In this document: positions 29,463 through 47,168 of the stretch, piece by piece | Layout of the letters: each line of letters begins with the position of its first letter | Numbering within the stretch: the stretch's first letter is position 1 | Origin: Chlorokybus atmophyticus | Taxonomy: Eukaryota; Plantae; Mesostigma and Chlorokybus algae | NCBI GenBank assembly: GCA_009103225.1 | Contig: RHPI01003642.1 | Span: forward strand, 218,451-282,450 | Length of the DNA stretch: 64,000 nucleotides | Direction of reading: 5' to 3' | Program-made: the position numbers and the translations under genes | Notes under the pieces: generated by a model | Databases searched by the model: none | Told to the model about the DNA's origin: nothing | Seen by the model: only the letters and a program-made list of their open reading frames with translations

Positions 29463-32164
29463 TCAAAGCGCAGTTCGCAGATTGATGAAAGGCGCTTCCG
29501 CAACAGCCAAGGGTATGGCTACTGCTAGCATAGCATGAAAGAGAAATTTCCTGAGCCGGACAGGCACCCATAAACTGTGCTGTTCTGATGCCCTTGTAGG
29601 CGAGAGACATGTTACCCATTCGGCTGCAAATGCCATGGCTGCCCCATGGGCAATGCAGAAGGCTGTCCAAGCTAACAGCCACGTGCTGTCATTGCCACCA
29701 GCCCTGCATACCAATAGTATAATGTTGAACTTACAACCTTGGTAAATGTTGCAGACAATGCAGATTTGAGATGGTTACTCACCAGCCTATGATGACGTGT
29801 CCAGCATACCCATAACCCAGCCACAGTGATAGCAGCAGGGTGAACACGGGCTTATTTGCTGCATTGACCAGAGAGCCTTGGTGCCACTGATGAAGGCTAT
29901 AAATGCCGGCCGCAAGAGCCGGAGCCAAGCGTATGTAGCTGGCTAACATGCAGCCTGCAATGCCAAGGACTTGCTGGGTTTGTCGAATGCCACCTGGCAT
30001 CAGCCAAGATGCAGGCGTCTTCGAGTTGTCAATGCACAACTCCATTGACCGTGTGAAATGCGGAGCCACTCCCCTCCATGCTTTGGTTGTCATGACAGCC
30101 AACACCAACGCCAGTCCTGGACAGCTCACACGTGTCAGTATAGTATACACACCTCAATGTCGGAATGGCAGGCAAGCCTGCGCATGCGACATGAAGCCCT
30201 GACAACCGGAACTGCCCATGTGCTGCGTCCACCACTTACCAAAGAGCAGCTCATCGACCAGCATGCGGCGTAGATCTGTCACAGCTCGTGAAGCCGCTTC
30301 TTCCTGCTTGTGTCTTCGTTTGTCATCAATCGCCTCTCTCTGGTTGGCAACACTCTCAGCAAGATGCGAGGTTGCTTCCTGCTGCAACTGAACACCCTGG
30401 CTTTGGACCTGCAGCCCTGCAAACTGCAGTCGCAACCCTTGCTCCTGCAAGCAATGACGAAAATCAACTATCAAGCCCCCCCACCGAAAACAAGCTTCGT
30501 GAACAGCCCATGCCGCATGCAAGCAGGTAACCAGCGACACATGATGATTACCTGCAAGTGGTTACTCTGTTCTAGAGCTACAGCCTTGCGAAACTGCACA
30601 TGCAGTTTAAGTGCGTGCCAGAACTCATTGCTGTCCAGGCCGCCAGCTGCAAGTGCACGAACAAGCCGCAAAGGACAGATGAAATCCGTCTGATGCTGAC
30701 AAGCTGCCCTCCGGGGCTTCACCTCACAACACCAATCACATGGAACACAACTAGCATGCTGTGATATTAGTCCACAAGCGTCTAGATGAAACTGACCTTG
30801 GTTGAGTTTCTGAACCATGAGCTGCTGCACATCCACAGCATCGCCTTGGTACATACCCGCCCTCACTTGAAGAGTGCGAGACTCAACGGGCATATACGCC
30901 GAAACACTTGCTTGCAGAGGTGCCAGCAAAGACTCGCACTGTTGCGTACTCCACATCTGCCCATGATACGACATTTCAGCAATGATGATGCGAGCGCAAC
31001 ATGCACACACAAGTTTGTGGTTGGGTTGTTGTATACTTTAATATTGAAAAACAATGTGCATAGCCTCACTAGGCTCATGCTGCTTACCGATTGTAGCTCA
31101 AGCTTGCAACACTCTGCTAGTATCTGCAATCAAGCTTCACTGAGATCCTTGCATCGGCAATACAATGCTCGGCGCTCTGTTGCTCCATGGCTACATGCAT
31201 GACACCCATGTCAGCAATACCTTTGCTACCTTAGCCGCATCCAGAGAGGCTCCATGGCTGCGATGCGTATCAAGCTGCATTGCAAGGACAAGACACGAGT
31301 TCAGCTAGTGCTGGTGGTGTTGCGTGTCTTCATGTGCGATAAGTGTGTACCGCCAAAAGAACGCATGGGCGTGCGGCCATCGTGTCAGGCTACAACAGAC
31401 TGCAACGGCTCAACAACGCTCTGGGCGCTTGATCTAACCTCTGAAAGCGCGGTCGCAAAGCCATGACCCAATCTTTCCCCAAGCGCAGCTAGAAGCGAGC
31501 TTTGCTCAGCTTGAACACCAACATGCGCACGCTGTTCAATTGGTTCAGCAACGCTAGAGCTGGGGTGCAGTTCGCTGACGACATCATGAGCCGCATGAAC
31601 CTCCTCCTCACTGTGCACAGCATGCACTTGCTGACCAAGCAGCAACTCCTGCAATTCAGCAGCGGCCTCCGCTTCTTCCGCTTCCTCCTCCGGCGCAACC
31701 CTGGCAGGCCTCAGACTGCTCCTGCTGACAGTGCGTGCGGGGCCGCTTGCAGCTGGGGTCAACGACCTTATAGCGCTGCAAGCATCGTCAGCTTCAGCCT
31801 CGCCTGCTTTAGCCAACGACCAGGCTTCCCTCTCCCTCAACCTCTGCGCCTTGTAGCGCTCAACCCGCCTGGTGAACCTGCGCCTCTCAAGGCGGACGTT
31901 GACGAAGAGCAGGATCAAAGGAATAAGCAAGCCGAGAGGAAGCAGCTGCAACACTAGCTGAGTGTTGAACCCTCCGCCTCCTGCTGGGCTGTTGCTGTTG
32001 CTGGTAGTGGCCGACGGCGTTGTTGTTGTTGCTGTTGAAAGTATTGTTGACGGCACAGTTTCCTGCAGCACCACCACCCGCTGCTGCTGCTGCCCAGCCT
32101 CAATCGCCCCCCTGAAACCGCGCCTCACCCCCGCCGCCGCCGCCAGGTTATCCTCCACAGCCAT
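29463..32164 (-). CDS. CPR5: CPR5-like transmembrane nucleoporin
   Basis: About 8 exons. LGERLGHGFATAL, coiled coil, then MELCIDNS..ASWLMPG, KPVFTLLLSLWLGYGYAG, GGNDSTWLLAW, PVRLRKFLFH..AIP..APF. These match, in order, recalled CPR5 motifs (LAKPLGFSLAAF; SVC..SSWWVP; MPISF; GGDGKLWLIVW; PYWARR..LP..LPF). Confidence 0.7.
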
Positions 32165-32749: not shown

Positions 32750-34997
32750 GCGAGCAGGCTCAACAGAGACAACTGAGATATGGTGCTGTCGGTATAATGG
32801 GGTTGTCAGCAGTACTTGTTGGCGTAACATCTGCGCTTGCGATTGCGGGATTCAACATCTTCGGTACACTATATGGCGTGCGACCTTGTGTGCTTGATTC
32901 GCATCGCACTTCAAACTAGCAATCCCAACTCGCAACAGGAGAGAGAGCGTATGCATGCAGCCATGCACAACGTATACGCGCGCAACTCTGCACATGCTCT
33001 TTAGCACATCCGTGTATTGCATTCAACGGACACTGTCAACGCTGCCTCAATGCGATAAGTCGTAGTAGGCATAAGGTGTCCTGTCATCATCAGCCAACAA
33101 CATGCAGGCCACAGACCTACCGTGTATGTCCCGGGCGCTTGTGATCGCCTTGAACCGCACCTTCGCCACCACATCGTTGGACAGGTAGGTGAGTGCTTGT
33201 CGCCTTCAGTTCAGTCGCTTCGTATCAATAGTTGATTCAGTGTTGTCGTCCTTGCGCATAGGATGATGCGGTGTCCCTGCTTGCCGACGCTGTGTGCAAC
33301 CACCTCGGTCAGCTTCATCCCAAAAAGCCGCTCGTGCTTTCAGTCCATGGGCCCCCGGGCGTGGGCAAGTCTTTCTTTCACCAGCTGCTAGCGGAGGTTT
33401 TGTATAATGTCACAAATGTTGAGGTATACTACATGAAGGCTGAACTTTGCACAGGTTTGCAAAGAAAGGAAGTCGGGTTGCTGATGTTATCTGCAGGACT
33501 GCCCTCCTGAGCTTGAAGACCAGTGCTGGCGCAACAAGTGCCCTGGAAGTCATTGCCCTAGCTATAAGATTGTATTCGGGACAGATTATGTGAGCAACCA
33601 GTTTGAGGTGCAGGCGCAGTTACTCAAGGTAAGATGCAGTAGTATGTCCATCGCAGTGGTTACGCTCTCTTGCTTTGCTGTTGGTGCAGGGCCTTCACAC
33701 CTGTTGTGCGCAGGATGCATTGTTGACGCATGTGCAGAAGCACCGAGAGTCCGTTCTTGTCGTTGAGGAGTATGACAAGGTGCAGTTGAAGGCTGCTTGG
33801 TCATGATGCTGCATTGCTTTGCTGGTTGCACACAAGAGAGACTTGTTTGGTTGCGCAGATGAACTGCCGCTCGCGTGGCATGCTGCAGCAGCTTCTGCTA
33901 AAAGGTTTTGCGGCGGCAGGCATCCAGTTTGACAGGTTTGCCGTGCACGCATTGCATAACATGGACGGCTGCTGAGGGGAATGTTTGGCTATCATTTTGC
34001 TCAATTGATGCGCTCTACACAGGACTATCGTGGTATTGGAGTCCAACGTTGGCTATGCTGAAGTTTTCAGTAGGCTTGAAGGAGGGAAACAGGTGCATAA
34101 CGTGCATACATTATGCCACGTCAAGGACAATTAACGTCAACTAACTTTGCTGCAGGCACCAGCGTTTATGGTAATTTAGGGTTCGGTGCTTGCAGGTGTC
34201 AATAGACGAGCTGCAGAGCATATTGAAGGATGCATTGTTCCAAGATTGGGCACGCCAGGGATGTGAAAGTCATGGCGATACATCAAAGGCCGTTGCACTG
34301 ATTGATGTGTATGTTCACATGTGGTGCTGCTGCTGCTGCTGCAATGGGCATTGTTTGTACACCTTCTTTGAGAGTGTCTGTGCCACTGCTAGCTGCTCTG
34401 CCTGCCTTTTGCAAGGCTCTCAACGCTGTTCAACAGGTTTGCACCGTTCACACCGCTGAACAAAGAGCACATAGAAGCACTGATGCGGCTGCAGCTGCAG
34501 CGACGGGTGAGCGATACAATTGGTGGTATGAAACGCGTGCAATATACTTACAAGGTGGTTGTATACTGACTAAAGCATCATCACGTGTGCACAGGTCGAC
34601 CGTCTGGAGTACGACCTTGTGAGGAGCGGCCTGGCAGACAAAGTAGAGTGGTCTGCTGGTGTTATCGACTGCCTCACCAGCAAGGTTTGCCATTACCTAT
34701 GCAAGCAGTGTCACTCTCAGCAGTAACAATAAAGCCCGTGAAGCAACACCAGTTCATCAGTCCATGTTGCCGTACCTGCAGGTGGAATTCGAGGGTGATT
34801 ACGCCATAGAGGGTGCCAAGTCAGTTGGCACTACAGTTGGGCTGCATGTAACAAGAGCCTTGAAAAGGCTGAAGGCAAGTCTAGGGGACGAAGTGCGCGA
34901 CGCTCACATAGGCAGGACGCTGCAATTCAGTGCAACGCCAGATGGCAGAACTCTTGCAGCAAGGTTACTGCCCCAGGAACAATGTTTACCTGGTTGA
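32750..34997 (+). CDS. Torsin-family AAA+ ATPase (start uncertain; possible ATG at 32797)
   Basis: Hydrophobic leader; LRHHIVGQ; KPLVLSVHGPPGVGKS (Walker A); VVEEYDK (Walker B); ALIDVFAPFTPLNKEH; EGAKSV (sensor-2 position). Confidence 0.8.
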
Positions 34998-43945: not shown

Positions 43946-44182
43946 TATGCTGAATGCAAAGCACTGCAGCCTTACCACTCACAGCTGCGGCGGTGGCGGA
44001 GAAGAAGCCCCCTTTTTCTGTGCCGGAGCAAGGGCCTGCTCTCCCACCCTCCCACCCTCAAGCGTAGACTCACCACACGTGTATGTAAGGGCCAACCAAC
44101 GTGACCAATGCAAGAAGGGAAAAGGGGCAAGGTCGACCAGCATGCGAGCATCGCTTCAGTTCCACACCTCAGGCTGTTTTCC

Positions 44183-44647
<465 letters not shown>

Positions 44648-45183
44648 TTGCTGACAGCCGTCAAGGTGATGGTCATGATATCTCCTGACTGAGCCCTGTC
44701 AATGCAATACACGGCATGGTGTGATGCGTAGTGTACCAGCGCGCTTTGTGCACGCGTCAGCACTGAGCGGCTTGGAGGCAAACAAGCCATGACTGACGGT
44801 CACTTCACCTAACAGCACAGGCCAATGGAGAAGTGACCACCTAAATCAGCGCATAAAAACACACTAGAGTCTTACATATTGATGTGTTGTGTGTGGCACT
44901 TGGAAGCCATGTGCGCTCAGCATGAATAAGTTGCACTAAAAGCTGTGACTGCGAACTGCACATTCCATCTCGCAATGCCTTTGTACTAATGCTGTACGAT
45001 GACGACAAGCTAACCGTCGCGTTCTCTTAGCTATACACTGGCTGCACGTCAACAACATGCAGGCATCGTATGATTAAAATGACAGCACAGTACCATTGAC
45101 ACTTGTCGTGGGAAACAAACAGACAGCAGGGTACCATGAGCTGAGCAGACCTCACCCAACTGTGTAGTTACTAGCACCAGAAT

Positions 45184-47168
45184 TCAGCAGTTGTACGGCA
45201 ACACATACTCTACTCTCCTGCGTATAACCTTCGATGTCAACTCATGCTGTATTCGTGTCTGGAGGTAATGCTTCACTGCGTGGTCAAAGTCATCATGAGA
45301 CTTCAGCCACTCTTTGCTGAAGGATGGCACCTGCCACACAGCAACAACAAATGAGTTGCAGTGCAGCAAAGCAAAGTACACTCAAACTATGATAAACTGC
45401 TCATGACAAGTTGCACGAACACGCATATGGTGTAACGGTCACCTCCATTGTGAGCAGTACAAGCGCATTCCACGCTGGGATTGATTTCCCCATGTGCGCG
45501 TATGAGCCTGTTTCACTCAGGGCAGGCACCAGTGCGTTAAGCTGCGCACAACACACATCCCATTGAGCACATTGAATCATGAACCCGTCTTGCATCGTGC
45601 AGCTGCTTACCACATCTGCTTGGATGCTGTCCAACGCCTCGACCACAATCACGCCATCCGGACACTTGTCCAAGAACTCTGCAAGGCGCAGCTGCAATTG
45701 CCCGCGTGACTCTTGTGAAGACACCGAACTGTTGGAGTAGTCGCCGCCGATTATGTGAAGCAAGCACCTTGTACTCACGCATTGGGAGAAGACAGCACTC
45801 ACTGCCTGCAACCATGTTGTCTCTTCAGGCCTGCAAGCGAACACACAAGTGCAGTTGTAAGGTACAACGTGCAACTCACTTGTGCAGCTTTTTGGCTGTT
45901 GCCCTGCGTTCGGCCTGCCAGCAGTGCAACCAGTGCTTTTGTGGGTTGAGCGCGTGCACGCAATGCTTGCTTGTCCCCAGCTTTGGCGCGCACATCATCT
46001 ATAAAGACTGCAGACCTGCAACCAGTATGACTGTTGTGCATAAGTCGTCACCACACATTGCTGCCCCTCTTTCTCCCTCCCCACAATACACTCACCCTCA
46101 CGCACATTTCCAGCCATTCCTCTGTTTGTGGTAGGAAGCTGCTGAGTTCTGCTGCGCTCACGCTTCCATAACATGGTCGCTGCCTGGATCCGCTCTTGTC
46201 TTGTGACAAGAGGGAAACCTGTCCGATCTACGCCAACAATGAACAATGTGTCGGCGGTGCGGTTGTGCAGCACAAATCAACATTGGCACACATACCCTCC
46301 AGTTTGGCACTCGTCCTTGGTTCAGGTACAGCATGGCGGCCACGAACAGTATAAGCAGTGGCAACAGGTAGCTGGCAACTGGGACGCTGCTGCCGCTCGC
46401 AGGGTTTGGCACTTCGCCCACGCTTGTGACTTGCGTCACCTCGACTCTGCTTGTCTGAATTACTCTGCGCTTGACCGTAGCATCTGCTGTCCCCTCAACG
46501 GTCGTCGCTGTTGTCACAGTAGTCGGCTTGGCAACCTGCATCGCGCTTGCGGCTTGTCAACATGATGAACTACACTAGCTGCCTGAACCATCAACTGGAT
46601 GAGTCAACTAGAAAGTGTTACTACAGCATGCACGAGCAGTCTTATACGAGTACGACACAGCTTGACATGGCACCCAACACCAGTGCCAAACCTATGCTGT
46701 GAGTGTGCTGATAAATAGCTGTCACACAACTGCTGTGTGCGACTGCTGCTCATATAGCATGTCACTCCCAAGGATGCTGATAGCGCATGCCTTGACAATT
46801 TCACAATCTCTCACAGGCTTAACCGACGGGGGCTGCACGTGTTGATGGTATTCCTCCTCTTCCTCCTCCTCCTCGGCCGACTGCACCTGAGTGGCTGCTA
46901 GCACGACACGACCGACAGAGACACTGTGCTGGTCTTCATCGCTGTCTATAACGTACTCGGAGCTGCGCCCTGTGCCAGCAGGGCTGTCTTCACCACCACC
47001 ACCACCACCACCACCATCACCACTACCAGCAACAGCCGTGTCCAGCACGTGCTGCTGCTGGACCCTGGACCCAGCAGTTGCCTGCCGCCGTCTCCTAGAG
47101 GATGGCGTCGCCGAGGGCGGAGCCGGAGACTCCTTCAGCTCCCTGCCTGACCTCGTTGACACCGGCAT
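45184..47168 (-). CDS. LAP1/LULL1 (TOR1AIP)-like single-pass protein with degenerate AAA+ domain
   Basis: Disordered basic/acidic N-terminus (SRRRRQ, poly-E); one TM (YLLPLLILFVAAMLYL); then an AAA+-like domain with no GK(S/T) P-loop (LVALLAGRTQGNSQK), degenerate Walker B (VIVVEALD), NALVLLTME, and C-terminal IRRRVEYVLPY. Confidence 0.6.

Follow-up and report, generated by a model that had tools for sequence, protein, structure and literature searches.

A LAP1/LULL1-like candidate torsin activator encoded near a finger-less torsin in the streptophyte alga Chlorokybus atmophyticus

To our knowledge, LAP1 (TOR1AIP1) and LULL1 (TOR1AIP2), represented by PDB entries 4TVS and 5J1S and by Pfam LAP1_C (PF05609), are known only from animals. 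Two studies supply the features that define them: both are type II membrane proteins with a Clp-D2-like luminal domain that has no Walker A, a degenerate Walker B, no lid and a conserved arginine (R563/R449), and in which a disulfide ties the C-terminus to helix a1 (C424-C582; C310-C468) (PMC4358337, PMC4999309). In animals, this design activates torsin (PMC4358337, PMC4999309). According to published statements, torsins themselves occur in animals, and neither plants nor single-celled organisms have them (PMC4358337; bioRxiv 10.1101/2025.11.07.687155). A literature search on algal and protist torsins found no mention of an algal torsin or an algal cofactor, and public databases already contain algal torsins, labelled Pfam Torsin but unremarked. 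Here we describe what is, judging from its sequences, a separate and unannotated green-algal family with the full LAP1/LULL1 design, both partners being encoded on one Chlorokybus scaffold.

Chlorokybus atmophyticus is an early-branching streptophyte alga. Within the window, a stretch of 64,000 nucleotides from one of its contigs, RNA contigs define a seven-exon gene on the minus strand that runs from an ATG at 47168 to a stop codon at 45184-45186 (Table 1). The contigs come from two studies (X1 and X2) and from a relative that is about 6% diverged (X3); once spliced, they give six introns, all GT..AG on the minus strand, and joining their pieces yields an open reading frame of 1290 nt (430 codons). 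The exon carrying the transmembrane segment and the exons carrying the AAA-like domain are thus joined in one transcript, with coordinates exactly those proposed from the DNA letters in the initial annotation. Exon 1, preceded by a 5' UTR that reaches at least 47206, encodes a disordered N-terminal region rich in Ser, Pro, Gly and Glu. The JGI Chlorokybus model of the same gene (P0001, 437 aa, eukprot jgi/Chlat1/5104/Chrsp33S05024) carries, compared with the RNA-supported product, an additional 7 aa at the exon 3/4 joint, without support in the RNA contigs; it was used as a stand-in for the 430-aa product in our analyses, the seven extra residues lying in helix a0. Three versions of this joint (46016-46105, minus strand) are on record: the in-frame joint of X1 and X3 (430 aa), that of X2, which uses an alternative exon 3 donor at 46096, 10 nt downstream, and whose frameshift leads to a 248-aa product, and that of the JGI model. 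The differences reflect either alternative splicing or assembly noise. The listed differences between the window and X3 number 40 and divide into 27 synonymous and 13 nonsynonymous ones (17 versus 6 in the luminal/C-terminal domain), and this synonymous excess fits purifying selection on the gene. A long (CT)n/(GA)n microsatellite with an assembly-gap run of N occupies approximately 44100-44690, 500 bp downstream of the 3' end of the gene.

Table 1. Features of the candidate gene and of the neighbouring torsin gene, in positions of the window.
Feature	Position	Strand	Basis
Exon 1, codons 1-118	46815..47168	-	RNA contig pieces and joints, ORF assembly; start codon 47168
RRRR run, residues 25-28, NLS-like (putative NLS function)	47085..47096	-	Read from the sequence
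Exon 2, codons 119-198, holds the sole transmembrane segment	46296..46535	-	RNA joints 46533/46813 and 46227/46296
Transmembrane helix, residues ~169-189 (VPVASYLLPLLILFVAAMLYL)	46323..46385	-	Kyte-Doolittle maximum 2.35, only peak >1.6
Exon 3, juxtamembrane luminal segment and start of helix a0	46106..46227	-	RNA contigs, ORF assembly
Exon 4, helix a0, strand b1 (LVALLAG), degenerate Walker A position (GRTQGNSQK, no P-loop)	45880..46015	-	RNA contigs, model
Exon 5, helix a1, CxxxxC, b2, a2 (RGxLQ..L..FL), CPxG, b3 with degenerate Walker B position (VIVVEA)	45611..45805	-	RNA contigs, alignment, model
Exon 6, a3, SExG, pre-sensor-1 beta-hairpin, b4 (LVLLT, sensor-1 position)	45443..45541	-	RNA contigs, model; CLPB profile match covers the stretch
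Exon 7 coding part, a4, a5, b5	45187..45330	-	RNA contigs; stop 45184-45186, 3' UTR to ~45060
Invariant RRR, proposed arginine finger, residues 419-421 (426-428 of P0001)	45214..45222	-	Alignments; end of a5 in the model
Torsin gene, 11-exon model, 379 aa, proposed partner	32797..34997	+	All-GT..AG model; Pfam Torsin; alignment with 13 algal torsins

The product has the layout that had been read from the DNA: residues 1-165 are of low complexity and disordered and include the basic run, a single hydrophobic segment follows, and the remaining ~235 residues form one C-terminal domain. Equally borne out were the lack of a P-loop lysine (GK[ST] is absent between strand b1 and helix a1), the degenerate Walker B and the C-terminal RRVEYVLPY, which in full is RRVEYVLPYNC. 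The protein is predicted to be of type II orientation with its C-terminal domain in the lumen. The positive-inside rule is not clearly met around the transmembrane helix; the luminal topology is argued from the long N-terminus, which has no signal peptide, from the SAP domains of relatives and from the conserved cysteines, four of which lie in the C-terminal domain and fit an oxidising lumen. An N-terminal SAP domain is found in two subgroups of relatives, with a strong match in P0007 and P0018 (E=2e-11) and a weaker one in the group of P0015, and these domains point to the inner nuclear membrane for at least some members, as for LAP1. A nuclear-envelope location is likewise presumed for the Chlorokybus protein.

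A full HMMER scan of 1.84 billion representative proteins with exons 5-6 as query found 12 true relatives, to which a profile search added three and a cluster look-up a sixteenth, from Cymbomonas, all 16 having the same layout. At least six proteins were found by a homologue search with the family alignment, and a word-indexed homologue search with the JGI model matched only that model itself. A bacterial cadherin/Ig-repeat protein from the representative search (P0006) shares no motifs with the family and was set aside as a chance match. Cluster look-ups trace the family to Cymbomonas tetramitiformis, to MMETSP transcriptomes and to marine, freshwater and soda-lake metagenomes, where it lies on compact contigs of picoalgal type; the family is therefore old, being present in chlorophytes (Cymbomonas and picoalgae) and in a streptophyte. 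It has no Pfam family or functional name and its members are labelled hypothetical; one UniRef cluster bears the name AP2/ERF domain-containing protein.

All 14 full-length members have a single hydropathy peak, corresponding to one transmembrane segment, N-terminal to the domain, and in all 14 the chain ends 8-19 residues past RRR-[IVF]-[DE]. The RRR itself is invariant in both family alignments (A3 and A4, of 15 and 17 relatives). The other conserved elements are CxxxxC, RGxLQ..L..FL..CPxG, SExG...G and a Thr at the sensor-1 position, and the conserved cysteines comprise the CxxxxC pair after a1, that of CPxG before b3 and one N-terminal Cys. Across 15 sequences nothing is conserved between b1 and a1 and no GK[ST] occurs, so that Walker A is lacking, and the b3 consensus, G.V.L, has no conserved acidic pair, which makes the Walker B degenerate. 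A C-terminal lid domain is missing as well, since the chain ends so soon after RRR (14/14) and the structural model stops after b5.

In sequence searches, Pfam LAP1_C (PF05609) gave no match at E up to 10 in 15 family members or in the JGI model, Pfam Torsin (PF06309) matched no family member, and Pfam searches with single exons of the gene were negative; the sole Pfam signal of the family is a weak, sub-threshold one to AAA_2 (E=0.02). Searches of PDB sequences with the JGI model or the family profile yielded no match to LAP1, LULL1 or TorsinA. With phmmer, the JGI model retrieved only low-complexity noise and a weak match to CLPB, whereas the family profile gave a match to human CLPB/Skd3 (E=1e-5) that spans Walker B to sensor 1 of its AAA+ domain, and weaker ones to ClpC, ClpB and Hsp104 D2.

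An AlphaFold2 model built with the family alignment (pLDDT 83.9, pTM 0.82) shows five core strands in AAA+ order, with a pre-sensor-1 hairpin formed by model residues 174-183. When the sequence is mapped onto this model, the interval from b1 to a1 is without a P-loop and b3 without a conserved acidic pair; RRR lies at the end of the last helix (a5), and the chain stops just past strand b5. In a Foldseek search with this first model, ClpC, ClpB and TorsinA stood at the top and LAP1/LULL1 fell outside the top 50. A structural ranking against 48,161 representative chains placed LULL1 first. With a second model (P0015, pLDDT 83.3) LULL1 scored 13.4 and CLPB 13.6, and since gaps of less than 1 Z unit count as ties, LAP1/LULL1 and Clp D2 are tied, so that the comparison identifies a Clp-D2-type AAA+ large domain and proves no specific relationship to LAP1. 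From these models we confidently assign the C-terminal domain to a Clp-D2-type AAA+ large subdomain of the HCLR clade (Clp/Hsp100/torsin). Language-model embeddings, which we treat as leads only, gave LAP1_C as the nearest named family to the Chlorokybus domain (0.86), and with P0015 put torsins (0.82) ahead of LAP1_C (0.81). The expected similarity to LAP1C and torsin profiles or structures was thus found in part: the AAA+ fold superposes on almost the entire LAP1/LULL1 chain, but neither the LAP1_C nor the Torsin profile matches. In the ESM Atlas, a Streptophyta cluster of 84 proteins (307 aa, AAA_2 in 18%) scored 0.83 with both family members used, and may represent a relative, in land plants, of this family or of torsins.

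The superposition also bears on the position of the invariant arginines. Every alignment ends with a model residue opposite LAP1 573, LULL1 459 or ClpB 755/756; if the last ten residues are ungapped, LAP1 R563 and LULL1 R449 fall on the middle Arg of RRR, and ClpB R747 on the third, in the three alignments.

The gene 10.2 kb from the candidate is a true torsin, as had been claimed for it: Pfam Torsin matches its exon 3 alone with E=3e-9 and the JGI model (P0091, Chlat1/5101) with 3.3e-11. Pfam and PDB phmmer searches with the other, short torsin exons gave nothing useful, and an Atlas search with exon 3 was uninformative. P0091 (452 aa) extends some 70 residues further upstream than the ATG at 32797, which itself opens a signal-like hydrophobic segment. 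A putative CPR5-like gene (31385-32164, minus strand) begins about 630 bp from this torsin start, head to head with it; its first exon (259 aa, one transmembrane helix) has no Pfam match.

A metagenome scan with torsin exon 3 led to intronless algal torsin genes, one of which (L011:3830-5269; Pfam Torsin 2.6e-13) has human Torsin-1A as its sole PDB sequence matches. As a query it retrieved 67 relatives, among them P0091, proteins of Chlorella variabilis, C. sorokiniana, Micractinium, Auxenochlorella, Trebouxia and Tetraselmis, and others on metagenomic picoalgal contigs. In an alignment of 14 green-algal torsins (A5: P0091, L011:3830-5269 and 12 others), Walker A (HGPPGVGKS), Walker B (VVEEYDK), sensor 1 (LE[SA]N) and a sensor-2-like EG[AG]K are invariant or nearly so, the last standing where animal torsins have Gly-Cys-Lys. 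The finger column, which precedes [IV]-[DS]-x-F-x-P-F-x-P-L and which an HMMER alignment to TorsinA places in the LIDYFVPFLPL segment, holds L, V or A (A-L-I-D and similar) and an Arg in none of the 14. Finger-less torsins are, by this alignment, widespread in green algae. Green-algal torsins are a well-conserved family in which CPGxxCxxY (CxxxxC) is an invariant insertion between the two Walker motifs; members of prasinophyte type have a long low-complexity insert after Walker A. Outside the green lineage, a 68-member Atlas fold cluster, commonest in Oomycota, has Pfam Torsin in 59% of its members, and torsin-like proteins may therefore also exist in stramenopiles.

Compared with these torsins, the candidate is the reverse throughout: torsins have Walker A and B, sensor 1, sensor 2 and a lid and have no arginine finger, whereas the torsin motifs (Walker A GxxGxGK[NS], Walker B, sensor 2, lid) are all absent from the candidate. 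The two groups belong to the same AAA+ clade and, probably, to the same compartment, and their profiles align, weakly but colinearly (hhalign E=0.003), with RRR opposite the Arg-less torsin column and with CxxxxC before b2 common to both. From Clp/Hsp100 D2 domains (ClpB, ClpC, Hsp104 and human CLPB/Skd3) the algal protein differs in having no P-loop, pore loops or lid, and in being membrane-anchored, predicted to be luminal and predicted to be unable to bind nucleotide.

LAP1 and LULL1 offer the closest match in design. They share with the algal protein the single-pass type II layout (predicted for the latter), a luminal AAA+-like domain of about 230 aa that is closest to Clp D2, the lack of Walker A and of a lid, the degenerate Walker B, and an Arg, strictly conserved, that closes the last helix some 10-20 residues before the C-terminus; Chlorokybus, moreover, also has a finger-less torsin. 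They differ in that there is no detectable sequence similarity (Pfam and phmmer were negative), that the disulfide between a1 and the C-terminus is not conserved, the algal family having CxxxxC and CPxG cysteines instead and only the Chlorokybus protein a C-terminal Cys, that the algal Arg is triple rather than single, that the algal N-terminal domain is disordered or SAP rather than LAP1_N, and that the family is found in green algae, not animals. Of the features published for LAP1/LULL1, six are thus present and two, the LAP1_C profile and the a1-C-terminus disulfide, are lacking, and for the latter reason we do not file the protein as a demonstrated TOR1AIP member.

We favour the reading, with a probability of roughly 0.6, that the candidate is a torsin activator, a membrane-anchored donor of an arginine finger to a luminal torsin. 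It would be a single-pass type II protein of the ER and nuclear envelope whose N-terminus, disordered with a basic run in Chlorokybus and a chromatin-binding SAP domain in some relatives, would face the cytoplasm or nucleoplasm. Its luminal C-terminal domain would be a catalytically dead AAA+ large subdomain of the HCLR clade in which the P-loop, the conserved Walker B acids and the lid are gone but the arginine finger (RRR) just before the last strand is kept. The luminal torsin, with its ATP site intact but no arginine finger of its own, would offer its nucleotide face to this domain for docking, and insertion of the arginine would trigger ATP hydrolysis, as with LAP1/LULL1 in animals. Torsin binding and ATPase stimulation are here predicted by analogy. 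The initial annotation had gone as far as naming the protein the cognate activator of its neighbour; its architecture, fold, key Arg and Arg-less torsin fit that claim, and the negative LAP1_C and PDB LAP1/LULL1 sequence searches, the structural tie with Clp D2 and the unconserved linkage do not.

The original proposal had presented the pair as a genetically linked system. In Chlorokybus, the two genes lie on the same scaffold under JGI model numbers 5104 and 5101. Six other LAP1-like loci had no torsin within their flanks, nine torsin loci had no LAP1-like gene within theirs, and none of 40 loci holds both families; the linkage is therefore absent at 15 other loci and conserved synteny was rejected. 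A torsin and a LAP1-like gene were seen together in Chlorokybus and in one freshwater metagenome (3300027621), where they occupy separate high-GC, intron-poor contigs (L003, LAP1-like; L014, torsin) that may come from one picoalga.

This lack of conserved linkage, together with the missing sequence link to LAP1_C and a fold match that ties with ordinary Clp domains, would suit a different role, in which the dead AAA+ module acts in the nuclear envelope or ER as a structural protein or adaptor, such as a luminal bridge or chromatin tether, with no part in torsin hydrolysis and with RRR serving folding or another ligand; the SAP domains, too, suggest that tethering could be the main function. 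We nevertheless consider such a role unlikely, for RRR is the most conserved single element of the family and sits exactly at the AAA+ finger position, torsin, the only known luminal AAA+ partner, is without exactly that Arg in every alga examined, and in its loss of the lid, Walker A and Walker B the protein matches LAP1/LULL1 in every point. Less probable still is that the protein binds torsin as a negative regulator or assembly cap, ending filaments or rings rather than activating. A domain with no lid cannot continue a ring, an argument already made for LAP1/LULL1 (PMC4999309), but a pure cap would give little reason for an invariant Arg at the finger position, and the same design activates torsin in animals (PMC4358337, PMC4999309). 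An origin of the gene by recent duplication of the neighbouring torsin, followed by degeneration without function, is very improbable in spite of the proximity on the scaffold and the CxxxxC before b2 in common with algal torsins, since the family profile scores ~0 bits against the Chlorokybus torsin, which largely refutes recent copying, and reaches algal torsins only at E=0.003 by hhalign, and since the gene is transcribed and spliced, its synonymous excess fits purifying selection, and its family is old and present in chlorophytes and a streptophyte.

As to the ancestry of the candidate activator, it either is a far-diverged LAP1/LULL1 orthologue or arose independently from an algal torsin/Clp-like gene, and the CxxxxC that it has in common with algal torsins hints at the independent origin. 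Since a protein built like LAP1/LULL1 is expressed near a finger-less torsin in Chlorokybus, the two-part enzyme probably also exists in green algae. We would venture only tentatively, as the less probable side of the question, that a two-component torsin machine, consisting of a finger-less luminal torsin and a membrane-anchored, dead-AAA+ donor of the Arg, is not an animal invention at all; it would have been present in the ancestor of green plants and animals and then lost in land plants and fungi, or been invented twice alike, with the algal activator tied to chromatin at the inner nuclear membrane by SAP domains. If true, this would provide a unicellular system for the role of torsin at the nuclear envelope. 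The LAP1-like algal family would in addition be a new family at the Pfam level. If the pair works together, either the torsin system had a much earlier origin or the case is one of clear convergence, and the function of torsin at the nuclear envelope, including pore biogenesis and the mechanism of dystonia, would become testable in simple photosynthetic cells.
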